This document shows, one piece after another, positions 1,730-18,527 of a stretch of DNA of 64,000 nucleotides. Every line of letters begins with the position of its first letter. Position 1 is the first letter of the stretch. Both the position numbers and the translations under genes were made by a program. The notes under the pieces were generated by a model. The model was not told where the DNA came from. It saw only the letters and a program-made list of their open reading frames with translations, and searched no databases. Where the stretch lies: NCBI GenBank assembly GCA_037379345.1, contig CM074519.1, positions 36,792,103-36,856,102 of the forward strand. Reading direction: 5' to 3'. The stretch is from Perna viridis (taxonomy: Eukaryota).

Positions 1730-3103
1730 TTTCCGTCATATTTCGTGCTACATAGACATTTGTGTAGTAATGTTTCCGCATCACATACATGTAGTATTTG
1801 GGTACTTGTTAAGGTCGAAAGTAATTTCGAATTGATTTCTCTTATATAGTTTAGACAGGATGTGACGATGCTTAATAATCAGGGAAATACTTTGATAAAA
1901 AGCATGAAAGGATGAAAGAAATATTTGACAAAAATGTACAATTATGTGAATGTCTGAAAGGTACCTTATACACTGTATATGAGCGCATTATTATGAAACT
2001 TAAAGTACACATTTTCACTGTCACCATATAAAGTCCTATCTCCTGCTGTATACTCGCTTAGACGCTATTTATCAGTTTTCGACTCTCCCACAAACAGCAA
2101 TAAGCACACGCATCCCTTACTGCAAATAATAATAATAATAATAATAAAAAACATGCGCGTTGGAAAGAGCTTCGAGGATTTGTAATGATTATTGCTTTTG
2201 CCATGTGAAAATTTTAGCAGTCTTTTTTTTTTTAAGAAATCATTAGAATTAGAGCCCGAAGAACTAATTTACAGATGTCGTGGCCTGAGACGTATTGTGA
2301 TATTTTTTTCTTTTTAAGAGATAATACATGAGTGAGGTAACTTAAAGAGTAGTTAGGGTTGCATTTATTCAATTGGTTTCATACAGTAAAGTTCAAATAA
2401 ATATTTGCTAGAGTCGCTTTATACCGTAAAATGCGAAGAATACAAAAACGAAAAAGGAGAAAAGGCCTATATTTATATAAATCCACAAGCCGTAACGTTC
2501 TGTCTCATATTATTTTTACTGAACTATACGTTGTCATGATATTGGAAAAAAATACTTTGTACATGTTCTAGATTTCATCCAGTACGGACTTATTACATGT
2601 ATACGACACATTTAGCATAAACTATTTCCTCTGTGTGTGTGTTTTTTTTTTAATGACGCATTGATTTCCGGTTACGCGGATGTTTGTGAGAACATTTTAC
2701 ATCAAATTATAGTTAGTGATCTGCCCTCAATGACATTTTTTTGTTGTTTTGTTTTGTTTTGTTTTGTTTTTTATTTTTAGGTCCTAAAGTTTATGAATGT
2801 CAATTGCTGGTGGTGTAATGTTTTTTTTTTCTTTATTTTCCCTATTTTTGAATTAATCTTTGCAAAACAATTACATTGAGTGAACACTTTCTATTTCTGC
2901 CCCATGCCTAGAAACTACACCTAAAAGGCTTCAATTCATCTACTGTTGATGAAGATACATGTACTGTATGGTCCATTTAGCTATTGGTGTGACAATTTGG
3001 GAAATTCCATGTGTAAAAATGTATTTATCGATGCCCTTATGCATGAAAACAAATTCTTGAAGCAAAATACACTGAGTAATTTTCCATTGTTGTTACACTC
3101 TTT

Positions 3104-3512
3104 AAGGCGTTTAGGTTTCCCCCACGCACAATACCCAAACGCACGATAAACAAACGCTTCTATCGTGCGTTTAAACAAGCGCTCCTCTCGTACGTTTAAA
3201 CGCACGATAAACGAGCGCTCCCAGCGTGCGTTTAAACGCACGATAAACGAACGCTCATATCGTGAGATATCGTGTAAAAATAATAATATTGACATATAAT
3301 GAAGACAGAAAAAATAGAAAATAAAATTAATGAAATCATATGAATGATAGCAAAAAATATAGAAATAACAGCTAAATCAAGGAAATAATAGAAGTACAAA
3401 AATAAACGAACGCTTCTATCGTGCGTTTATCGTGCTTTTAAACGAACGCAAAACGATGTGAAAACGCACGATAAATGATGCACGGTCGCTAAAATGGGAA
3501 ACGTGAACGTGT
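3104..3512. mobile_element. Palindrome-rich MITE/foldback-like element (second copy ~10708-11115)
   Basis: Array of alternately oriented AAACGCACGATAAACG / ATCGTGCGTTT units. Imperfect terminal inverted match cgtttaggtttccc / gggaaacgtgaacg. Confidence 0.5.
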
Positions 3513-3819
3513 CCAGGAGTGTAGGCCCCGCTTAATCTTGTTGAATAATTGTACATGGACATGTTCCTTCCAACTTTGACATAAAAATACCCCATCACCG
3601 CAGGGTATCATGATAAGATGTGTCACCAACAATGTTTTACAAACCGTCGTAAAATTAGGCCCTTTCCTCTCCCGCGGCATTACAACCAACGGTAGTACGC
3701 TTAGCGAAGGAGAAGGGGTACCATGCTGCTAGTGTCCCCTCACTGACAGGTTTCCGCTCAAGTACAAACAAAATGTACGAACTTTGTTGTGAGAGTCATC
3801 TGGTCTCACTGAATAGAGT

Positions 3820-3975
3820 GTCTAATGTCTTGATACTAGTACCCTTAACTCAGTTTCAGGCCATCTTATTTTACGAACTCCAATGAACTTGATTTTGTAC
3901 TGCTTGATTTTCCTTACTAGTTTAGCGAATTTCTGAGTTTGGTAAAGGGTCTGCATGTTCAAGCAGCTCATTTGT
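3820..3975 (-). pseudogene. Degenerate RTE-type LINE endonuclease N-terminal fragment (copy ~11425-11578)
   Basis: CLNMQTLYQTQKFAKLVRKIKQYKIKFIGVRKIRW resembles the APE start consensus WNVRTLxxxGKxxxLxxEMxxYxIxxLGxSExRW. Confidence 0.6.
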
Positions 3976-4235
3976 CGAAGTATCTCTTCTTTCGAGGTGA
4001 AAACAAAATACCCATCATTCTTCCATCGTATTGTGTGGTATCTATCTTTCTTCAATCATGTATATTCAATAGCTGGAACTCATTTTTAAAGTGAACAAAT
4101 GATACTGAACCAACAAACAACCAGGCATATAAAACAAGGATTGAGGTAGTACACATGTATCAACAAATATCGTATCAATTTGAGAACACAGCTAACATAG
4201 TTATTACGCAAATACATGTGTGTCTACTTCATCGT

Positions 4236-4327
4236 ATTCGGTTAATATCTTTACAAATTATGAATATTCGGTTAATATCTTTACAAATTATAAATATTCG
4301 GTTAATATCTTTACAAATTATGAATAT
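4236..4327 (+). repeat. 3x 30-bp minisatellite (copy ~11839-11930)
   Basis: attcggttaatatctttacaaattatgaat repeated three times. Confidence 0.9.
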
Positions 4328-4942
4328 ATGAGCTATAAATCGCCAATTTATTTTGCCGTTGATTCAAACATCTTACACGAAAAATGACAAGTTGAAGGTG
4401 CAGGTCTTATTTGGTAGGTGGGGCAGAAAATATGATAAAGTCATGTCATTTGCGGAACTATTTCAATTAGTTCTTTTAAGTTAAATTACACGTTAGTATT
4501 GCATTGTCATAGACATAAGCTAATTTTTCTATCTCTGTAATATTATACTTCGACTACATCCGTAATTAGCACACTACAACCATTTCATCTACAAGTTTTT
4601 TTAATACATAGATAGACACCTTTAAGATATCCACATAAAAAATAAATAATTTCAACATACTTACAAAAAACCAACTTTATGAAGTGTCAAAATTTAACGC
4701 TTTTTCTGACATTTATGAGTATCTTATATTATGTACATACATTCATACATACACGTTTAACAGTGAAAGTTTTGATTTTTGTATACTTTTTACTTTATCT
4801 GTTCATGTTAAAATAATATCCTGATAACTTCGAAACTATCCATTTTCTCATTGAAATGATAATTGTACAATAACGTTTCAGAAAAGTTAATCATTTGAAT
4901 TGTTCACAATTTTACAATATGGCACATGAAGAATCAATAGTA

Positions 4943-5443
4943 TTAACTATCACCGTTTTTAACTCCACTAGAAGCATCCAAATAACTATATCTTTGTGTT
5001 GCTGTGTTTTTGTCTTGATGTTGTTTCTGTTCAGTTTTTGAATGACGACCGAACTTATACTTATTTTTATTTTGCTGTTCTACCGTGAATTGTTCTTGTG
5101 GAATAGTTTGAGATAGAGGTCTGTCATGGCTACTATTCCAATCATTGTGATAGTTTGTCTTATCGGGCAACTCTCTGTGAGCTTCATGATTAGGTTTTTG
5201 TGACTCGTTGTTTGAGTAATTATTCATCGAATGCGATGCCAATGATTGGTATTTATTCCTCCCATGTGTTTTAATCTGTAAATCGTTTTGTAATTGGTCA
5301 TAACCATTGTTTGGAGATTGTGGACCTAGAGGAAGATATTTATCCGTTTCGTGTCCGTTCGTCTGTTTTAATTGATCATATTGTTCTCGACGTTCTTTTT
5401 CACCAAGATATTCATAATATCTGTCTTCTATTTCATCGTAGAC
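4943..5443 (-). pseudogene. 5'-truncated duplicate of the MS4A-like terminal (Tyr-rich) exon
   Basis: Matches 12547-13050 but lacks the splice acceptor and the first ~60 nt. Several Tyr motifs are altered (YLSL to YLPL/YQSL, YREL to HREL). Confidence 0.85.
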
Positions 5444-6800
5444 GTTTGGTCAAGTCAATTAACTGGCTATTTAAATCTCACCACTTACTACAACGCAGGT
5501 AGGTCGTCCTGCCACAAATGAATGAATCAAAATTGATCTTCATAATCATTTTGTATTACATCATTTTAAACTCGGTGAACTGGTGAATGCCAAATATTAT
5601 GTATAAAGTCATTTATTTTCTTTACAAAATCATAATTGGAATTTGGTAATGACACAAGAAATCAAAATTTATACCCAATTGTTTAAATGCTGTAGCAACC
5701 CGTGAAAGATTTTGTTCAGAACACAGAATCTTAGTACTATTTTATTGACTATCAATGCAAATAACTTGTGTCTTAGAGCAGCTAATTATTAGGCGAGATA
5801 CGTAACAAAACATATGTGTAATATGATAAAGACTAATATATAGAAATACAGTTTAATAAAAATGTGCATCAGCGTTAAGTTGACAATTCAAAACCAATCT
5901 AAATCTCTGATAGGTTCCCTCAGTGACTCATCTGATCCATTCATAAGTAGTGTTGTATCGTCAGCAAATTGAGAAAGTGTATGTTCTACTTGAGTGATTA
6001 CTAATATTTTATCATTTTCTCGAGTCTTCTAGCTCTATAGATTCGAGAAAATGGTCAGAAAAGCAGATAAAATAAAAAGGTGAGGTGAGAAAGGATCTCC
6101 CTGCCTACATCCTCTTTCAATGTTGAAAAAAGATGAAATTAACCGTCTTGAAAAATTGATATTTCTAGCCAGTTATTTGTGGAAGTATAGTTACTTTTAA
6201 AATTAATCAAAAATCCTATTTTTGAAGGATTCGCTAAGGAGTGGTATTCTTTCTGTTTACGATATTGTTGATGAAAGGCCTTTTATAAAATTTATGAACA
6301 TTTGTGTGATAGATATAATACAAACATAAATGTTTTGGAGTATAATGGTATCGTATCCATGTTATGTAAAATAAAAAAAAAAAGTTTCATCTCAGGATTT
6401 TAAGTGATCTCTACCATTATATCTATTATACAAACTATTTTGAAAGTCATAGATTGTAACATGATATGTTTGAGGTGTGTGTTAAAAAATGATACTGTAT
6501 TCCTACTGGAAATGTCAAGTACGAAATTTTATTAAATTTAAACAACCATATAGACTGTGAAAAGGTCAGTAAAATGTCTTTTATTAATACAAAGAATCCC
6601 AAGTTACAGTGGTTACAATACATGATTTTAACCACGAACAAGTTTTTATATGGGATTAATAAGGTCTCCAACTCTTTTTGTGTTTTTCGTAAAAATGAAA
6701 ATGAAATGATAGATTATTTATTATGGGTATTTGAAAATTGTACAGAACAATGTTTTACTATGGATCAAACATCAAACTCATGTAGAATTTGTTGATTTAG
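5444..6800. mobile_element. Decayed L1/Tx1-type LINE ORF2 fragment with internal inversion
   Basis: Minus strand ~6150-5450 encodes FFNIERGCRQGDP, SQFADDTT, QLGINF and IQNDYED..INFDSFICG. Plus strand ~6160-6800 encodes a KNP(F/W)KD-like segment and the zf-RVT-like KLQWLQYMILTTNKFLY...FC...IDYLLW. Confidence 0.8.
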
Positions 6801-6848: not shown

Positions 6849-9333
6849 TTAAATTTCCACCACGTTCGCATTTAGTACCTCGGCATAGCCTGGATCGTAC
6901 GCCACGCTGACAGAACGATTAGTTCTGATAGAGGATGCCCGAATCTGACTGTTTCTGTATCGTTTTAACTTTTCTGTCATCATCTGTTTAAGATGGAGGA
7001 AGAGAGTTGAGATGAAAACGAGGGCTATGAGAACTGCAGCTATTCCGATATATGCATGTATAAGATGAATGTTACTGTCGTCTATAATAGTACGAACAAA
7101 GGTATATCAAAACCATGTTTATTCGACTTAAATATAAGACAGAACAAAAATAATCTTTCTTGAATGTGTTCATTATAACAGATACAAGTTTCTGGCTTAA
7201 TTGTGATGCTATATCCCATTCTATTAACACTGATTGAGGACAGTGAGATCTCATAGGAGCCACTTGAAACGGATACACCAGTTCTGTTGTCACATGTCAA
7301 TTCCTCTGTAGAACAATCTACGTAAAAAGTACACAAAAGATACTAAATTTGGTTCAAGAGCTAATGGATATACAATATCGCATAAAATCTCATGATATTT
7401 CTTTTTCTTTAATTATTTAAAATATATGTACTTATGTAATTAACTCATCAAGCATTTTGGAAGTTCATGTTTTTCACATCAACGCGTGAATGAAAACTAC
7501 TCTGATTGATTTTTGTCAGCGCTGGCCTTTCCAAAGTCGTATGTATCAGCTATAGACGTGAAACTTTATTTAATACATTAGATATCGTTCCATTTTATCT
7601 ACTTTAATTATTTATTTATCAGCTTACCAGGGGTCGACACACATCCCTTAGTTGCATCACAAATCTGGTTTCTTGTACAGTTACATTTATCTCGGCATTT
7701 AATACCATATCTTCCTGGTAAACATGAAAAATTGCAATTCTTACCATAATACCCAGGTGGACAAGCTTAAAATATAAGAAAGCATCAAATTATGATATGT
7801 ATTTTTCGTGCGTTAATAATATAAGTGTTATTTAATAAACCTTGTCAGTTGCCACAGTTTGTCTCGCGATACAGCGTGCTGACTCATATATGAAAGGTCG
7901 TTGGTTCGATCCACATCAGAGTAATATAAAGACTTCAAATGTCTCTGCAGCACAAGCGGAGATAACATTGGCTCGAGCTCGGAGTCAAAATAATGTGAGA
8001 GGGATGTCATACCTACATGTGGACTATTTCTTCTATGAGTTACATTTAAGCACATTAAAGATTAGGCTCAGAGTGTCAGACAAATACAAAGCCCGGCTTA
8101 TCGATTGATAAAATGTTTTCGTCCTTAAATACGTTAAAATATTTACCATAGGATTTTTACACAAAAATGTAAGCAAGCTGTGATTGATTCGAGAATAGTA
8201 GAATCATTCGAGTCACAGGTAGAAAGTATCAGTATGTAACTAAAATGAAATCGATCTTCGTATCAAAAACATCTGAATTGTAACCATAACTGTTGAAATA
8301 TCCATATTTATTTCATCGTATCGTAATAAGTTTTTTTCCGTTCTGTTACGAGAAATAAAACAAATGAAGAATTCAGTATTTTTGAAATATAATGAAATAA
8401 AAATAAAAGTCATGTTATAAATCGTACCTATACAGGACTTGTTTACTTCATGAAAATCAGCACAGCAATAGAATTTTAGTACGTGAACTACCGCGCTGCA
8501 ATAATAATATTTGCAATTATTACATGTAAACAGCGAAGATTATTGAAAGCATATTTCATCTCCTTTTTGTCAAATGCTTTGCATTGACAAGGCGCGACTT
8601 TTTGTACCAAGTCATTAACTTTTTCTAACATGGTAGATTTAATTTATATTTTATATTTTTATACTAGGATAATACATGTGTATGATGGAATAAACTCATG
8701 CGATCATGTAGTTGCATGAACATTGTTTATTCCAATAACTGCATACGATTGTCGATATCGAGCATCATATGAGTTTAGAATTTTAACAATTACCAGAGTG
8801 GTTTTAGGCTAAAAGTTTCATGGTATGATGCCTAGCATCTTTGACACCCTATTCTTTACATGACATAGTCAGCAAATTTGTTAGTCAGAAGAATCGTTAG
8901 TACTAAGAATTAAGTTCAAGGTTAAAATTTTCCTCTAAATTTAAAACTTTAGCGTTCGTTCTTTAAATGTCGAAAATTAGAACATATGCTTTAATTTAAG
9001 TATTTTCGGCGTGCATAACGAGTTCGTCAATTTCATTAGTTTAATAAAACAAATGGGAAAATATCAATCTTCTTATGGAGTTTATTCTTCAATCAATTTA
9101 GGAGAAATGCACTTAGGTTATACACTGAACAAATACAAATGGCATTTGATCTAAAACGTACGATTCAACAATAATCTTCATTGTGTTAGTAATAAATTGC
9201 CTTACCCATTCTGTAGAGTTAGTTTTTCTTTTCTCGGGCATGCATTACTTGATCTGTTCTGAGAAATAGATGTACACAATGCAATTTTAAAAGAAACGCA
9301 AATGAACATGTAGATATATATCCAATATCTCAT
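6849..9333 (-). CDS. EMI/EGF (MEGF10/SCARF-like) single-pass receptor, copy B, ~201 aa; exons 9206-9333, 8428-8495, 7628-7765, 7279-7317, 6849-7081
   Basis: Phase-consistent exons total 606 nt: signal peptide, CCxxF motif, EGF repeats, linker DCSTEELTCDNRT, TM AYIGIAAVLIALVFISTLFLHL, and a tail with YDPG/YAEV. An AATAAA lies ~30 nt past the stop. The exon-4 donor (GTGTAT) is less certain. Confidence 0.8.
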
Positions 9334-12300
9334 TTTCCGTCATATTTCGTGCTACATAGATAATTGTGTAGTAATGTTTCCGCATCACACACATGTAGTA
9401 TTGGGTACTTGTTAAGGTCGAAAGTCATTTCGATTTGATTTCTCTTATATAGTTTAGACAGGATGTGACGATGCTTAATAATCAGGGAAATACTTTGATA
9501 AAAAGCATGAAAGGATGAAAGAAATATTTGACAAAAATGTACAATTATGTGAATGTCTGAAAGGTACCTTGTACACTGTATATGAGCGCATTATTATGAA
9601 ACTTAAAGTACACATTTTCACTGTCACCATATAAAATCCTATCTCCTGCTGTATACTCGCTTAGACGCTATTTATCAGTTTTCGACTCTCCCACAAACAG
9701 CAATAAGCACACGCACCCCTTACTGCAAATAATAATAATAATAATAAAAATAAACATGCGCGTTGGAAAGAGCTTCGAGGATTTGTTATGATTATTGCTT
9801 TTGCCATGTGAAAATTTTAGCAGTCTTTTTTTTTAAGAAATCATTAGAATTAGAGCCGGAAGAACTAATTTACAGATGTCGTGGCCTGAGACGTATTGTG
9901 ATATTTTTTTTCTTTTTAAAAGATAATACATGAGTGAGGTAACTTAAAGAGTAGTTAGGGTTGCATTTATTCAATTGGTTTCATACAGTAAAGTTCAAAT
10001 AAATATTTACTAGAGTCGCTTTATACCGTAAAATGCGAAGAATACAAAAACGAAAAAGGAGAAAAGGCCTATATCCTATATTTATATAAATCCACAAGCC
10101 GTAACGTTCTGTCTCATATTATTTTTTCTGAACTATACGATGTCATGATATTGGAAAAGAAACACTTTGCACATGTTCTAGATTTCATCCAGTACGGACT
10201 TATTACATGTATACGACACATTTAGCATAAACTATTCTTCTGTGTGTGTATGGTTTTTTTTTAATGACGGATTGATTTCCGGTTACGCGGATGTTTGTGC
10301 GAACATTTTACATCAAATTATAGTTAGTGATCTGCCCTCAATGACATTTTTTTGTTGTTGTTGTTGTTTTGTTTTGTTTTTTATTTTTAGGTCCTAAAGT
10401 TTATGAATGTCAATTGCTGGTGGTGTAATGTTTTTCTTTTCTTTATTTTCCCTATTTTTGAATTAATCTTTGCAAAACAATTACATTGAGTGAACACTTT
10501 CTATTTCTGCCCCATGCCTAGAAACTACACCTAAAAGGCTTCAATCCATCTACTGTTGATGAAGATACTGTATGGTCAATTTAGCTATTGGTGTGACAAT
10601 TTGGGAAATTCCATGTGTAAACATGTATTTATCGATGCGCTTATGCATGAAAACAAATTCTTGAAGCAAAATACACTGACTAATTTTGTATTGTTGTTAC
10701 ACTCTTTAAGGCGTTTAGGTTTCCCGCACGCACAATACCCAAACGCACGATAAACAAACGCTTCTATCGTGCGTTTAAAAAGCGCTCCTCTCGTACGTTT
10801 AAACGCACGGTAAACGAGCGCTCCCAGCGTGCGTTTAAACGCACGATAAACGAACGCTCATATCGTGAGATATCGTGTAAAAACAATAATATTGACATAT
10901 AATGAAGACAGAAAAAATAGAAAATAAAATTAATGAAATCATATGAATGATAGCAAAAAATATAGAAATAACAGCTAAATCAAGGAAATAACAGAAGTAC
11001 AAAAATAAACGAATGCTTCTATCGTGCGTTTGTCGTGCTTTTAAACGAACGGAAAACGATGTGTAAACGCACGATAAACGATGCACGAACGCTAAAATGG
11101 GAAACGTGAACGTGTCCAGGGGTGTAGACCCCGCTTAATCTTGTTAAATAATCGTACATGTACATGTTCCTTCCAACTTTGACATAAAAATACCCCATCA
11201 TCGCAGGGTATCATGATAAGATGTGTCACCAACAATGTTTTACAAACCGTCGTAAAATTAGGCCCTTTCCTCTCCCGCGGCATTACAACCAACGGTAGTA
11301 CGCTTAGCGAAGGAGAAGGGGTACCATGCTGCTAGTGTCCCCTCACTGACAGGTTTCCGCCCAAGTACAAACAAAATGTACGAACTTTGTTGTGAGGGTC
11401 ATCTGGTCTCAGTGAATAGAGTGTCTAATGTCTTGATACTAGTACCCTTAACTCAGTTTCAGGTCATTTTATTTTACGAACTCCAATGAACTTGATTTTG
11501 TACTGCTTGATTTTTCTTACTAGTTTAGCGAATTTCTGAGTTTGGTAAAGGGTCTGCATGTTCAAGCAGCCCATTTGTCGAAGTATCTCTTCTTTCGAGG
11601 TGAAAACAAAATACCCATCATTCTTCCATCGTATTGTGTGGTATCTATCTTTCTTCAATCATGTATATTCAATAGCTGGAACTAATTTTTAAAGTGGACA
11701 AATGATACTGAACCAACAAACAACCAGGCATATAAAACAAGGATTGAGGTAATACACATGTATCAACAAATATCGTATCAATTTGAGAACACAGCTAACA
11801 TAGTTATTACGCAAATACATGTGTGTCTACTCCATCGCATTCGGTTAATATCTTTACAAATTATGAATATTCGGTTAATATCTTTACAAATTATGAATAT
11901 TCGGTTAATATCTATACAAATTATGAATATATGAGCTATAAATCGCCAATTTATTTTGCCGTTGATTCAAAGATCTTACACGAAAAATGACAAGTTGAAG
12001 GTGCAGGTCTTATTTGGTAGGTGGGGGCAGAAAATATGATAAAGTCATGTCATTTGCGGAACTATTTCAATTAGTTCTTTTAAGTTAAATTACACGTTAG
12101 TATTGCATTGTCATAGACATAAGCTAATTTTTCTATCTTGGTAATATTATACTTCGACTACATCCGTAATTAGCACACTACAACCATTTCATCTGCAAGT
12201 TTTTTTAATACATAGATAGACACCTTTAAGATATCCACATAAAAAATAAATAATTTCAACATACTTACAAACAACCAACTTTATGAAGTGTCAAAATTTA

Positions 12301-12546
12301 ACGCTTTTTCTGACATTTATGAGTATCTTCTATTATGTACATACATTCATACATACACGTTTAACAGTGAAAGTTTTGATTTTTGTATAATTTTTACTTT
12401 ATCTGTTCATGTTAAAATAATATCCTGATAACTTCGAAACTATCCATTTTCTCATTGAAATGATAATTGTACAATAACGTTTCAGAAAAGTTAATCATTT
12501 GAATTGTACACAATTTTACAATATGGCACATGAAGAATCAATAGTA

Positions 12547-15500
12547 TTAACTATCACCGTTTTTAACTCCACTAGAAGCATCCAAATAACTATATCTTTG
12601 TGTTACTGTGTTTTTGTCTTGATGTTGTTTCTGTTCAGTTTTTGAATGACGACCGAATTTGTCATACTTATTTTTATTTTGCTGTTCTACCGTGAATGGT
12701 TCTTTTGGAATAGTTTGAGATAGAGGTCTATCATGGCTACTATTCCAATCATTGTGATAGTTGGTCTTATCGGGCAACTCTCTGTAAGCTTCATGATTAG
12801 GTTTTTGTGACTCGTTGTTTGAGTAATTACTCATCGAATGCGATGCCAATGATAGGTATTTATTCCTCCCATGTGTTTTAATCTGTAAATCGTTTTGTAA
12901 TTGGTCATAACTATTGTTTGGAGATTGTGGACCTAGAGAAAGATATTTATCCGTTTCGTGTCCGTTCGTCTGTTTTAATTGATCATATTGTTCTCGACTT
13001 TCTTTTTCACCAAGAGATTCATAATATCTGTCTTCTATTTCATCGTAGACATCCGAGTGATTAATTGGTTCTTCGTAGCTTAAAGCAGTGATTTGATCAG
13101 TCGGATCATCTCTGAAAAAAAGAAAATACTGTTGCCTGTACCTTGTTTTTGCTATTTCTTTTTTTTTTCAGAAATGAAATATTACTCTTGCATATTTGTA
13201 CTTAAGTTATTAATTGAGATAATAATTGCTGGCTTCTTATAAAGCTATTCCAGAACTGTCAGAAAAATGACAGTAATAAGACAGATTAGAACAGTTCTAC
13301 GAAAGATCTAGAAACAGCTTTTAGTTCACCTCTTGTAGGGAATTAAAGCTCTAGAACGTTTCTAACTCAGTCATATATTGTAGAAATGCAGCTTTACGAG
13401 AAATGTTGCTGTATAATGCAGGTATTGTTATAATAAATCAGTTTTGAGCTATCTGTACTAGAGCTGTCAGAAGAACCCAATCTAGAACTATGACACTTGA
13501 AGAAAGATTCGAAAGGCGATTTCCTTACAGATTATCTGAAAGATCAGAATTTTATCTCCTTTGAGCCTATAACCAGGACAGATTTCCTAATATCTGGTTT
13601 TAGTCGAGTTGATTTTATGACTCACTTTTTGTAAATCCATGTATTTAAAACGACTTCACACTTTACGCAGAACATTAATATATAATATTCAGAAAGAATC
13701 TACAACGTAAAAAAAAATTGAGNNNNNNNNNNNNNNNNNNNNNNNNNNNNNNNNNNNNNNNNNNNNNNNNNNNNNNNNNNNNNNNNNNNNNNNNNNNNNN
13801 NNNNNNNNNNNNNNNNNNNNNNNNNNNNNNNNNNNNNNNNNNNNNNNNNNNNNNNNNNNNNNNNNNNNNNNNNNNNNNNNNNNNNNNNNNNNNNCACTGT
13901 CATTTTATTCCACATTGTCATAAATAGATAATGTCTTGGAATAGAAAAAAACAACGTATATTTACCTAGTTACGTGGTCATTGTTAACCTGTGATTCTTG
14001 TACAGGTGGAGCTTCTGTTTCCGACCGTTTAATCTAGAGGTAATATCATAAGGTAGCTTGCTCATATGTAGTTGGTTAAATGATCACAAAAAAACAATGG
14101 AGTTTAGTCGTTCTTAACGTGTAAACGTCTTGATGAAAAATATATATAGGCTAAATTCATGCCAATGAGATAATGAAGGTTCAAAAACGCCTTGCGATGA
14201 TATGTAACAAGAGAACTAAAAATGGGGCTTTTGACTTGGATAAATATGATAATAAATTAACACGGCTCGCATTTTTTGGCATTTCTAAGCTTCATATATA
14301 AATCTATTTTATGTCTATAACAAACAACTGCATCTATATATCCATAAAACAAAACAAAAAGAACTAGTTATGGGATGAAAACAGTTAAGGACATCATGAC
14401 ACAAATATATACTTTGAGATGTCTTAAGATAGCAACCATTTGATTTTTTTGGGGGTTAGGATGGGGGTTGGATCAAATTTTTCGTCCTGCATATTTTTTG
14501 TATTAAGACTATCATGAATTAATTCTAGCTCCTCTCTAATAAAAATCAAATGGTTGCTCCCTTTTGTTATCTTCATTGATAAAGCACGTATACATATTGC
14601 ATAACCACCTTAGCTTAGCGTAATTAATTAGTGGAACTATTGTAAGAGATCGAAAATCAGGAAATATAAAGCTGGTCATCTTTAATTGATTAAGTACCCT
14701 GTAATCATCCAACGACGAACAACAGCAGCACACTGAAGCCGATATAACAGCAATGATGAATTCTAATGTAGAAAAACTCATTATTACTACCTGTAGGGCT
14801 ACTTGTGGATCAGAGTCTCGCGATAGGGATATCTGAAATTATCATCAATATTAAAAGTACATTTAACAATACATACAGATATAGAATTAATGAGATTTTG
14901 CTTCATAAAATAAATTAATGTGAATATTTTTTTCATTTAAAAGATGAAATGAATTGGTATTCTCTTGTCAAAGTTACATGTGATTTGTTCTTCTAGTGCC
15001 ACATTTCACTTTAGCAATGTTTAAAAGTAGGAGACACTCGGGAACATGATCATTCGTTTATGATGTATAGGAAGTCGGAGTCACTCAAATTCGCTTATTG
15101 TTTCTAATGTAGTTATTTCAATTGTTGGTTGTTTCTGTGCATTTGGTATCACATTTCGTCAATATAATAAATCAAGGAGTACACTGAAAGACCGACCTCA
15201 GGCTGAACTTGACCATTTTATTTATTTATTTTATTTTTTTTGGTCTATGAGGAAATAATTCAATCTCGTGGTGCACACTAAATAATTTGTGTAGCAGGTT
15301 ATTTTCAAGTGTGCACCACGGGCTTTGAGGTTATTTCAATTAGAATGAAAAATACGAAAGCCATTCCTTAAATTAATCATAGTACCAAAACTCGTCGAGA
15401 AAATCAATAAAAAGTTGATGAAGACATATTTACATTACAAAATTTCGTCTATGTGGTGATGGACAAATTTTACTAAAATCAGAAAGCGTGATGCTTTTGA

Positions 15501-17364
15501 AATTAAATTATATGAACTACTTAGTAACTAAAATGTATTTCTTACCGCTATCAAAATTATCAGTTCCATTATAATAATGGCAGGTACAAATAATGCCGCT
15601 CCAAGAATACTGAAAACCATGAAAGCTATTTTCTGTAATAGAACAGAGAAATTAATCTTCAATTTTGTTTTGGTTTTACAAACATTTGTGGCACAAACCC
15701 TCAATGCTTCATTTTGTTGTGGTCTTGAAACTTTTTGAGAAGATATCGATCTGTCCCGGAACTTTTTTAAAGGATACCAATTTGCCCGGTGGCAGTTTTG
15801 TGCTGCCTTTTTGTATTGCGATATACCGGTACCAACTAATCGTCAAGGTAGAGGGAGGTGTAACGCACTGTAAAACCTTATTTAACCAAATATTTCGGAA
15901 ATGCCTGTACCAAGTCATGATCATTGCGGTCGTTCCCAACGTTTCAGTATTTGATATCTTCAATTGTTTCAATGTACATGGAAATGTCCTTCTTTTACAT
16001 CTGCTTGAAATAGAGTGATTCCTATTTCAGTGTAAATCTATGTAGGTTACTGAGTAATATAAATAGCTCTCTAGATAGAAATCTGCTCTATATTATACTA
16101 ATGTGTCCTACTTAACTACCACATAATACCTATGCGATCTTTTGCTTTTTAAGTATGAATAGCATTAACATACCTGGATTTGTATTGAAATTGGAGTAAC
16201 TCCTATCCAATCTGCTGTAACTATTCCTTTTAACCATTGCCTGGAGAGTTAATTTTGTTATGTCACCGGTTGCGTGGGATTCTGTCAGTGTGTGTGTGTT
16301 ATTTTGGTTTCTAATTAAATCATATTCCCTTTTCTTTTCGTAGGATTCTCGGTCATTTCATTTTCGTTTTTCTTATCAAACCTGGCGTGTATCTGGTATC
16401 AATAAAGAAGATTCATCGCCGTACCGATAAAAGTACAATTCAAAGAATCTTCCATGCAAGATAAAAACGGTACAATATGAAGATAAAATGCCAATAATTA
16501 TGTCACAATACATGGTGACTTCCTTACCAATCCTTTCCAAACAGATCTGCGGGACTCGGACATGAAAAGAGGAAATATGCCCGTCAGAATAAACTGTAAT
16601 ATAAGATAAACATGTAATGTAACGTAGTGATATAATTTTAAACCTACAATACGGGTACATTTGTACTTGTATTGTACATGTACATATCGTAGCAAGGTTC
16701 TTTTTTTTTCAACAACTGTGATTTCTTATCCGTCAAGCAAAAATATGCAAAATAAAGAATAGAACGGAAAGCTAATATAAAATTGATAATATAGATTTGA
16801 CAAAAAAAGAATCCAGCTTTAATATACTTTTTTTCAGACGGCTTATATGCATCTTTGCACAAGTACAGGTAGACAAAAAGTTAAAATGGTGGCCCTTGTG
16901 TGATATAGCCTATTAAGGAGTCTAGTGTTGACACGGTATGTGATACAGATTTTGACGTAATATTCAGTATATATTGAACTCTGGTGAAAAGGTATGCGTT
17001 CAGTATGTTGTGTGTACTAGAGAAACTTACATTGTACATGTACATGTAGCATGATTAAACCTGTGGCATATTGTAACAAAATTAGGTCAGTTGGCAAACT
17101 ATTCAAATCAAAATATACTATATTTTAAATATTTACCCAAAAGGACAATGTAAGGCTGCCAGCATCAAGTCCAGTAACTCCTAGTGTAGACATGTGATTC
17201 GACAGACTAATACTGTTTGATATTACACATGTCAAGCCAATAGCACAATGAATCCCCCCAAGCACCCTGAGCACTGGGATACGATGGGGTTGAACATGTG
17301 TGTTACCTGCTACTATAACGACTTGTTTTCCGTTTAACACCACGACATTTTCGCTAGACGCCAT
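12547..17364 (-). CDS. MS4A/CD20-family tetraspan protein with long tyrosine-motif tail, ~382 aa; exons 17137-17364, 16528-16593, 15546-15632, 14698-14832, 13966-14033, 12547-13111
   Basis: All junctions are GT-AG and in frame (1149 nt). MS4A-like features: VLGGIHCAIGLTCVIS (TM1), SFW/FILTGIFPL (TM2), KIAFMVFSILGAALF (TM3), STLEFIIAVISASVCCCC (TM4 plus Cys cluster). The N-gap lies in intron 5. Confidence 0.88.
13723..13894. other. Assembly gap (N run)
   Basis: Run of N characters. Confidence 1.
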
Positions 17365-18527
17365 TTTTTCATTAACATATATACAATAGATGGTGAGTTC
17401 TGAAATGTAAAGCATTCTTGGGGCTCTTAAGCGTCTTAGGAAATCTGCAGTACAAAATGTAACAATATGGAGGTTGTTTTAATGTCACAACAAACGAAAA
17501 CTACACCATAGGACTAACGAACTGTCAGATTATCATTAATGCGGATTAATTGTTTTAATGGTGTACACTGGAATTTATAGTGAATAAACCCTGAGTTTTG
17601 CATGTAAATATCTCATTTTTAACTACTCGTGGAATGGCAGGGTAGTTAAAATAAGTGTTAAGATATCTTTAAATTTTGCTGACTAAAGAATACGAAATAG
17701 GAATTCCACATTTAAGTAAGATTATACGGTTGTTTAATTTTTAAACAAAATATTGTTAGTCCTTTCCACTTCTCTGCGCTAACAGTCTTTTGCTGAAGTG
17801 GATTCGGACTTACGGAATGGGCTTGAATTCCCCGACATCCAAATTTTCTAAACTTCACAAACTAATGGTGTATTTTCCACCCCTTTTTAATGCTAACTTT
17901 ACATTACTCGCCATTTTGCAGTAGCGGGTTCAGAGATTTAATAAAAATTTGTCCTCAAGAAAATAGTAAAAGCATTTTGCGTTCATAATATAATCCTAAA
18001 TAAAGAAATAACAAATCGCTTGATTAATTTGATTATCATGTGCAATTGTTGTCGGTGTAATATTTTTTAAAGATTTAAACATAAAAATTATAATAAAAAA
18101 GAAAACTGTATTCATAATAGGGTTCGGGCATCGCGGGACTCCCGTTGTTTCCGCCTATGGTTTTGCTATCACTTGTACACAATACACACTAATAATAAGG
18201 TACTCTCCTTCTGTTATTAAACGATTCATAGAATTAAGATTAAGTTATCATAATAATATAATGACTTGAAAAATATGAATATGTAAAGGATAGAGTATCA
18301 TATTAAACTTTTATCTTACCATCATCATTCTGTAGCCATTTCCAATCCCACAAACAACATAATACCCCGGATGTGATGAAACATCTTACCGTAAGTGAAC
18401 ACATCCTGTTGTCACCTTTATATCAACATTTTTTTTCCACTCGAACGAGCCTGATTTCCAGATTACATATCCACCCACAATTAACATTTTATTCGTTTTT
18501 TATATCTTTTTTATAGCATAATGTCTA

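Follow-up and report, generated by a model that had tools for sequence, protein, structure and literature searches.

A transcribed four-pass protein of the mussel Perna viridis with conserved ITAM-like units in its cytoplasmic tail

Signalling subunits such as CD3-zeta, FcR-gamma and DAP12 have almost no ectodomain and contain an acidic residue in the membrane, and CD3-zeta carries several ITAMs (immunoreceptor tyrosine-based activation motifs) in tandem, which multiply the docking of Syk and ZAP-70. The four-pass protein MS4A2, the beta subunit of the Fc-epsilon receptor I (Fc-epsilon-RI), has an ITAM in its C-terminal cytoplasmic tail (PMC11663944). ITAM-Syk signalling in bivalves was previously shown for a single-pass immunoglobulin (Ig) receptor: the ITAM of CgIgR from the oyster Crassostrea gigas, DYTELGQCDPETPYEKL (YTELG-x7-YEKL), is reported to recruit CgSyk and to activate ERK (PMC6994640). 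No description of an invertebrate multi-pass ITAM adaptor was found in the literature searched. Here we describe a gene from the mussel Perna viridis, located in a stretch of 64,000 nucleotides (nt) of contig CM074519.1 (GenBank assembly GCA_037379345.1, positions 36,792,103 to 36,856,102). The stretch is called the window and is numbered from its first letter. The gene is transcribed from the minus strand and encodes a member of a bivalve family of proteins, with four hydrophobic helices and a tyrosine-rich tail. The protein is tentatively interpreted as a far-diverged CD20-like branch that serves as an ITAM-type signalling subunit of another receptor.

The exons were placed by three-frame translation of the minus strand and exact location of the exon ends (Table 1). 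The six coding exons, between 17364 and 12547, sum to 1149 nt and form 382 codons, in which the sole stop codon is the terminal one. All introns start with GT and end with AG, and the splice phases 0, 0, 0, 0 and 2 agree. Exons 1-4 encode four hydrophobic helices, and helix 4 ends with ..LEFIIAVISASVCCCCSS, which includes a cluster of four cysteines, CCCC. The gene structure bears out the splice-consistent four-transmembrane protein ending in CCCC that was proposed in a preliminary description of the locus. The outer loops have approximately 13 residues each and are nearly free of positive charge; the loop on the inner side, SESRRSVWKGLK, is basic. According to the positive-inside rule, both termini of the protein are probably cytoplasmic. 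Because of the small size of its outer loops, the protein can hardly bind a ligand itself. The tail that follows helix 4 has about 210 residues and is polar and acidic. The 3' untranslated region extends to at least 12200. A candidate 67-nt exon at 16174-16240 was rejected, since it breaks the frame and the RNA splices 15632 straight to 16528.

The RNA data came from four runs: X1 and X2, used as Logan contig sets and presumed to be RNA, and X21 and X22, which consist of stranded raw RNA reads. A single 1084-nt contig from X2 contains the joints 13111/13966, 14033/14698, 14832/15546 and 15632/16528, all at the predicted sites, and three of the joints are repeated by raw reads from X21 and X22. 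In a contig from X1, exons 5 and 6 are joined, and the loose end of this contig agrees with exon 4. The first mate is on the plus strand in all reads from the gene, as would be expected of a minus-strand transcript with the common types of stranded library. The contigs from X1 and X2 cross the assembly gap in intron 5 and join 13966 directly to 13111. Therefore, the gap hides no obligatory exon and the reading frame is unaffected. Reads and a contig ending at 17400 run on for 30 letters, the sole window match of which is 18321-18350. This indicates that an untranslated 5' exon exists, which adds to the exons listed in the preliminary description.

Two short stretches inside introns, 15277-15340 (intron 3) and 16092-16122 (intron 2), have a high RNA depth, and several runs show loose ends flanking them. 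RNA from 15277-15340 is present on both strands. The two stretches resemble fragments of an abundant repeat, or of a transcript that originates elsewhere, and not exons of this gene.

The 187 codons of tail encoded by exon 6 include 14 tyrosines, eight of which are in the YxxL/I context, a number that was not reached in any of 100,000 shuffles of the tail (P < 1e-5). All the motifs named in the preliminary description were located: YEEP, VYDEI, YESL-x8-YDQL, YLSL-x8-YDQL, a second YLSL, YREL, YDKF and YSYL. In addition, the tail contains two YxN sites, YSN and YHN. The ITAM consensus used for comparison was (D/E)xxYxxL/I, a spacer of six to eight (up to 12) residues, and YxxL/I, on the cytoplasmic side of the membrane (PMC6994640, PMC11663944). 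It is matched by DRYYESL-x8-YDQL and YLSL-x8-YDQL (units 1 and 2), both on the presumed cytoplasmic side. At least two pairs with the ITAM spacing of 6-8 occur in 0.05% of the tail shuffles (P = 5e-4). The two ITAM-spaced motifs had been attributed to an internal repeat, and both units indeed descend from a single one, YDQL...KYLSL, so that they do not represent independent events. A reading of the tail as an ITIM (immunoreceptor tyrosine-based inhibitory motif) was rejected for lack of any (I/V/L/S)xYxx(L/V/I) context.

The tyrosine motifs are conserved in the relatives of the tail. One of these is P0002, a 139-residue open reading frame (ORF) on two ENA metagenome contigs. Its best match in this genome is the window tail exon (E = 2.8e-11), and its splice acceptor agrees with that of exon 6 in position and phase (..CCAG/A GAT..). 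The similarity of P0002 to the window exon at the DNA level is confined to 49 nt. Judged from these data, P0002 comes from a different species and is either a distant orthologue or an old paralogue. It carries three units, YESL-x9-YQRL, YEGL-x8-YTQL and YEKL-x8-YEHL, as well as YEEP and YDEI. The repeated units of the form YxxL-G-x7-YxxL in this chromosome-9 subfamily number two in the window gene and three in P0002. All 11 aligned tyrosines are identical between the window tail and P0002, compared to 31% of the non-tyrosine residues (Fisher p = 9e-6; the statistic is somewhat inflated, as aligners favour Y-Y matches, and the alignment has few gaps). Seven of the nine leucines are identical, and the overall identity is 37.5%. 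The tyrosines thus stand out from the residues flanking them, a comparison on which the preliminary description had made its proposal depend.

At 20 paralogous loci, between 3.3 and 7.9 kb of sequence downstream of the helix-4 exon was scanned for tails. ITAM-like tails were found at only two of these, L011 and L014, both at C9:40.33-40.35 Mb, and a tail profile search of the genome detected no further tails. The tail of L011 reads YSEI-x8-YETL-x8-YDHL...YLEL-x8-YDQL, and that of L014 contains YLEL-x8-YDQL. L011, L014 and P0002 all retain the x8 spacing, except that one unit of P0002 has x9. The sample behind this conservation is small, at four independent sequences. Unit 1 is kept in P0002, with the x9 spacing, and in L011. 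The sole invariant columns of the five-tail alignment, Y30, L45, Y56, L59, Y68, Q70 and L71, are residues of the motifs, two of them (Y and L) in unit 1 and five (Y, L, Y, Q, L) in unit 2.

The four-pass core has numerous relatives. Across the genome, 21 matches to the helix-4 exon form tandem clusters at C3:17.1-17.3 Mb, C5:27.5 Mb, C5:41.9-42.1 Mb and C9:40.33-40.35 Mb, and the family comprises at least 20 genes in this genome with a common exon layout. Conserved throughout the family are the strings F(I/L)LTGxxPxCM....W(R)CL, K(I/T)xFMVxSIxGA and (L/V)ExxxA(I/V)xxAS(V/Y)CCCC. The long first-exon ORF of one paralogue retrieves full-length Mytilus proteins, all of which are annotated as 'uncharacterized', and the retrieved homologues have no precomputed Pfam domains. 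The exons of the window gene are colinear on the profile of the Mytilus proteins: exon 1 matches positions 30-57, exon 2 116-137, exon 3 138-162 and exon 4 175-205. The boundary between exons 2 and 3 falls exactly between profile positions 137 and 138. The E values, for a search of six sequences, are 3.8e-8 for exon 4, 1.8e-6 for exon 3, 2.6e-4 for exon 1 and 2e-3 for exon 2. This ordered, exon-by-exon match makes the membership in a bivalve (mytilid-type) family secure. The identity to the Mytilus proteins is about 60%. The glutamate of helix 4 is conserved family-wide, including in members without ITAMs, and it is therefore not specific to the signalling subfamily. Overall, the family looks like a constant four-pass core combined with exchangeable, motif-bearing tails.

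The paralogues L024, L027 and L032 at C5:27.49-27.59 Mb have a first exon with a long N-terminus containing repeated ..NMNTTP.. units. Their outer loop 1 has about 40 residues and is rich in cysteine and tyrosine, and as a subfamily they differ considerably from the window gene.

The family probably belongs, as a distant member, to the CD20-like (MS4A/TMEM176) superfamily. When a Mytilus homologue was used to query the ESM Atlas, the nearest clusters with a family name were CD20 clusters from echinoderms and cnidarians (scores 0.88 and 0.87; 181 and 173 features in common), and the ten best family-bearing matches all agree. A query with exon 1 alone gave nothing above 0.75. Four of the ten Mytilus proteins have weak matches to the CD20 profile PF04103, all in the same register, from helix 1 to helix 2 (profile positions 1-76). 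The best score in the family, 16.4 bits (E = 0.009, PF04103 positions 1-41), belongs to exon 1 of L025 (..LKTLGSIQIGIGG..SPVWCGIW). L025 is the most distant paralogue, and CD20 is the sole match of its first exon. The window protein has a CD20-type topology, with four helices, short loops and termini that are presumed to be cytoplasmic. The arrangement of the genes in tandem clusters, as in MS4A, is suggestive but not family-defining. The gene is certainly not an orthologue of any vertebrate MS4A gene.

A signalling mechanism can be proposed for the protein. The CCCC cluster after helix 4 is a likely palmitoylation site. This cluster at the cytoplasmic end of the helix, the family-wide glutamate, the short outer loops and the ITAM-shaped units are together consistent with a membrane-raft adaptor. 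It would function as a signalling subunit paired with another surface receptor. Upon clustering, Src-type kinases would phosphorylate the paired tyrosines, and the doubly phosphorylated unit would dock the tandem SH2 domains of a Syk-type kinase. The presence of several units may amplify the signal. This scheme of clustering, phosphorylation and tandem-SH2 docking is that of Fc-epsilon-RI beta (MS4A2) and CD3-zeta. A more specific version, which is conceivable but doubtful, makes the protein the bivalve counterpart of Fc-receptor beta, a palmitoylated CD20-like adaptor with two to three tandem ITAMs that connects a haemocyte receptor to Syk. As part of this joint and similarly doubtful reading, the counterpart would have originated either independently or from deep ancestry, and would be built like MS4A2 while carrying multiple ITAMs as CD3-zeta does.

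Several results weigh against the interpretation of the protein as a CD20-like signalling subunit. Four of the five coding junctions implied by the six exons of the preliminary description are present in RNA, whereas the predicted joint between exons 1 and 2, 17137/16593, is not listed in any of the four runs. Instead, a contig from X2 with a depth of 18.7 joins exon 2 at 16593 to 17307, and this frame-breaking donor is dominant in run X2. As read from the sequence, the use of the 17307 donor, 58 nt past the ATG, deletes helix 1 and shifts the frame, which leads to a stop in exon 4. Two TAG codons immediately precede the 17307 junction in the frame that preserves exons 2-6. The long form of exon 1 is supported by a contig from X1, a run without coverage of intron 1, which is contiguous over 17158-17360. 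Reads of X21 from the upstream exon must pass 17307, and no joint or loose end is reported there. Furthermore, paralogues from the same genome end the exon after the same tryptophan, and the annotated Mytilus proteins have a matching contiguous ..SGW-YVVTG.. sequence.

Alternative splicing is also recorded in Mytilus. Relative to the isoforms P0014 and P0016, P0015 skips exon 2 and P0013 skips exons 2 and 3, so that one helix or two are missing. These isoforms and the 17307 donor jointly suggest that helix-skipping splice forms are common in the family.

The profile searches provide further counter-evidence. PF04103, which has a curated cut-off of 27.9 bits, does not match any of the six exons or the four exon ORFs of L004 and L005, the two nearest paralogues, at E <= 10. 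A six-frame search of the genome with PF04103 missed the locus and returned three weak matches elsewhere, which have no similarity to the CCCC family by tblastn. The full-length Mytilus homologues (n = 10) score only 7-10 bits, with a maximum of 9.8, and MARVEL matches of 15-18 bits lie beside the CD20 ones, out of register. In the PDB, phmmer with exon 1 and the family profile search yield chance matches only and no CD20. The AlphaFold model calculated from a shallow Mytilus alignment is unusable, with a mean predicted local distance difference test score of 37.7. A survey from 2010 identified no clear MS4A genes in invertebrates (PMC2826416). The designation MS4A-like from the preliminary description is suggested by the language-model neighbours, the in-register weak matches, the topology and the tandem clusters. 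However, all PF04103 scores are below the cut-off, and the match to the CD20 family model anticipated there was not obtained, as no score reaches 27.9 bits and the best is 16.4 bits.

The tail has a narrow lineage. In a search of 1.84 billion representative proteins it matches only P0001, the duplicated copy of the exon described below, and P0002, and a word-indexed library search with the tail found nothing besides these two. There is no ITAM-like tail among the annotated Mytilus proteomes, and the three tail-bearing genes of this genome are all on chromosome 9. One of them, L011, has stops in its exon 1 and exon 2 alignments and is probably a pseudogene. In X22, a 1-nt deletion at 12959 is present in 15 of 20 reads; the protein encoded by this allele ends eight residues further on and keeps only unit 1. 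The X22 frameshift and the pseudogene paralogue show that some individuals can dispense with the distal tail. Furthermore, Y109 of the YREL motif is a histidine in all runs, the reference allele being the odd one. The narrow lineage of the tail, the unconfirmed junction and the below-threshold family score limit the weight of the finding.

The scarcity of relatives, the expression of the frameshifted allele, the dominance of the frame-breaking splice form in X2, the stops in L011, the Tyr109/His polymorphism and the truncated duplicate of the tail exon nearby would all fit a tail that arose recently as a lineage-restricted, low-complexity extension and is weakly constrained, its motif pattern having no dedicated function, in a gene that is perhaps being lost. 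This explanation is very improbable in view of the 11 of 11 tyrosines kept at the low overall identity to P0002 and the conserved splice phase. Nine substitutions were found in exon 6 in the four runs; four are synonymous, and none affects a Y or L position of unit 1 or unit 2. The substitution S58P changes YLSL to YLPL. The main allele of X22 has nine extra nucleotides at the start of exon 6, and this indel is in frame. Alternatively, the YxxL motifs of the tail might be sorting signals of the YxxPhi type, recognized by the mu subunits of clathrin adaptors. The tail would then control how the four-pass scaffold is endocytosed or delivered to lysosomes, and would recruit no kinases. Each of the units likewise fits YxxPhi, which speaks for sorting and against the kinase-docking role, and the truncated allele of X22 retains several YxxL motifs. 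Moreover, the tail ends of sister subfamilies from Mytilus carry PPAY or PPSY of the trafficking type, which suggests that tails with sorting and adaptor motifs are interchangeable. However, such signals do not need a fixed x8 pairing, yet the pairing and spacing are kept in the paralogues and P0002. The acidic residues before the tyrosines are ITAM-like, and the oyster ITAM, which has the same shape, is reported to bind Syk (PMC6994640). Sorting is thus considered an unlikely explanation of the motifs, and the sorting and kinase-docking roles are not mutually exclusive.

It is comparably unlikely that the tail is a LAT-like phosphotyrosine scaffold for proteins with single SH2 domains (Src, Crk, Grb2 and phosphatases), with the ITAM spacing as a by-product of the repeat and no involvement of Syk. 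Such a scaffold would explain why YDEI, YEEP, YSN and YHN are present in the tail. YDEI and YEEP are close to the preferences of the Src and Crk types, and YxN is of the Grb2 type. The origin of both units from one duplicated segment, YDQL...KYLSL, and the conservation of all 11 aligned tyrosines, beyond those of the ITAMs, also agree with this explanation. However, the x8 spacing is kept in the independent YETL-x8-YDHL, YLEL-x8-YDQL, YEGL-x8-YTQL and YEKL-x8-YEHL, which would be unexpected if only single sites mattered.

Table 1. Features of the four-pass protein gene and of its surroundings in the window
Feature	Position	Strand	Description
Exon 1, coding	17364-17137	minus	N-terminus, helix 1, short outer loop 1, start of helix 2
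Exon 1, whole	17137..17400	minus	acceptor 17400, ATG 17364, predicted donor after 17137
Exon 2	16593-16528	minus	rest of helix 2 and basic inner loop (FILTGIFPLFMSESRRSVWKGL)
Exon 3	15632-15546	minus	helix 3
Exon 4	14832-14698	minus	short outer loop 2, helix 4 with conserved Glu, ..SASVCCCCSS
Exon 5	14033-13966	minus	start of cytoplasmic tail; ends in phase 2
Exon 6	13111-12547	minus	187 codons of tyrosine-rich tail and stop codon
Untranslated 5' exon, 3' end	18321..18350	minus	30 nt, continuing from 17400 in reads and a contig
Alternative inner donor	17305..17307	minus	exon end 17307, GT at 17306-17305
Assembly gap	13723-13894		within intron 5 (13112-13965)
ITAM-like unit 1, YESLGEKESREQYDQL	12976-13023	minus	preceded by D-R-Y
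ITAM-like unit 2, YLSLGPQSPNNSYDQL	12898-12945	minus	D at -2, not -3
Truncated second copy of tail exon	4946..5449	minus	inside 2.55-kb duplication

The window contains a direct segmental duplication of 2.55 kb, 10500-13050 versus 2890-5443, with an identity of 97.3%. It includes four-fifths of the tail exon, on the 3' side, together with the flank downstream of that exon. The tail-exon copy at 4946-5449 has no usable acceptor, and in-frame stops are located just upstream of it. P0001 is the same ORF as the copy, from another public assembly, in which TGG replaces the upstream TGA. The copy was also considered as the tail of the neighbouring epidermal growth factor (EGF)-type gene, and this was rejected because there is no acceptor and every phase is stopped just upstream.

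The duplicated flank includes a 30-nt tandem repeat in three copies, at 11839-11930 and 4235-4327, one frame of which reads ..IFIICKDINR... Directly upstream of the truncated tail copy, at 5891-6172 of the minus strand, ORF fragments resemble a reverse transcriptase (..RGCRQGDPFSP..FADD..), and a retroelement insertion may mark the boundary of the duplication. An EGF-type exon at 7611-7766 of the minus strand has a weak match to PEAR1/MEGF-like EGF sequences (E = 0.004). Beside it, an exon at 6852-7106 of the minus strand encodes one hydrophobic helix and, after it, a basic stretch. A MEGF/PEAR1-like receptor gene is probably located between the two tail copies.

As far as found, no invertebrate protein has been described in which a four-pass, probably CD20-like core is joined to two or three conserved ITAM-like units. 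If the tail docks Syk, the protein would be a testable case of signal-amplifying subunits arising by the addition of a modular tyrosine tail to a tetraspan scaffold, and would offer a handle for the partner receptors of bivalve haemocytes. The family itself is a sizeable unannotated group with swappable tails, which contain PPxY in some members and ITAM-like motifs in others.

The 'uncharacterized' Mytilus proteins (LOC143079541, LOC127703081; P0006, P0016) share with the window protein the four-pass core, the exon boundaries, the FxLTGxxPxCM and KxxFMVxSIxGA strings, the glutamate in helix 4 and AS(V/F)CCCC. In contrast, their tails are rich in glutamine and proline, end with PPAY or PPSY and contain no ITAM-spaced pairs, and cysteine and tyrosine are abundant in their longer outer loop 1. 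MS4A2 resembles the window protein in its four membrane passes, termini located inside, small outer loops, tandem gene clusters and ITAM in the C-terminal tail, and both are presumed to be signal-amplifying subunits and not ligand binders. However, MS4A2 has one ITAM, whereas there are two units in the window protein and three in P0002, the similarity of the family to PF04103 is below the threshold, and the CCCC after helix 4 belongs to the bivalve family. CD3-zeta, FcR-gamma and DAP12 have in common with the window protein the scant ectodomain and the acidic residue in the membrane, and CD3-zeta also the several tandem ITAMs. Nevertheless, they are single-pass, disulfide-linked dimers without a sequence relationship to the four-pass protein described here. 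The oyster CgIgR, also from a bivalve, has an ITAM of the same YxxLG-x7-YxxL shape with the x8 spacing. It is a single-pass protein with five Ig domains and one ITAM, whereas the window protein combines several units with the lack of an ectodomain.

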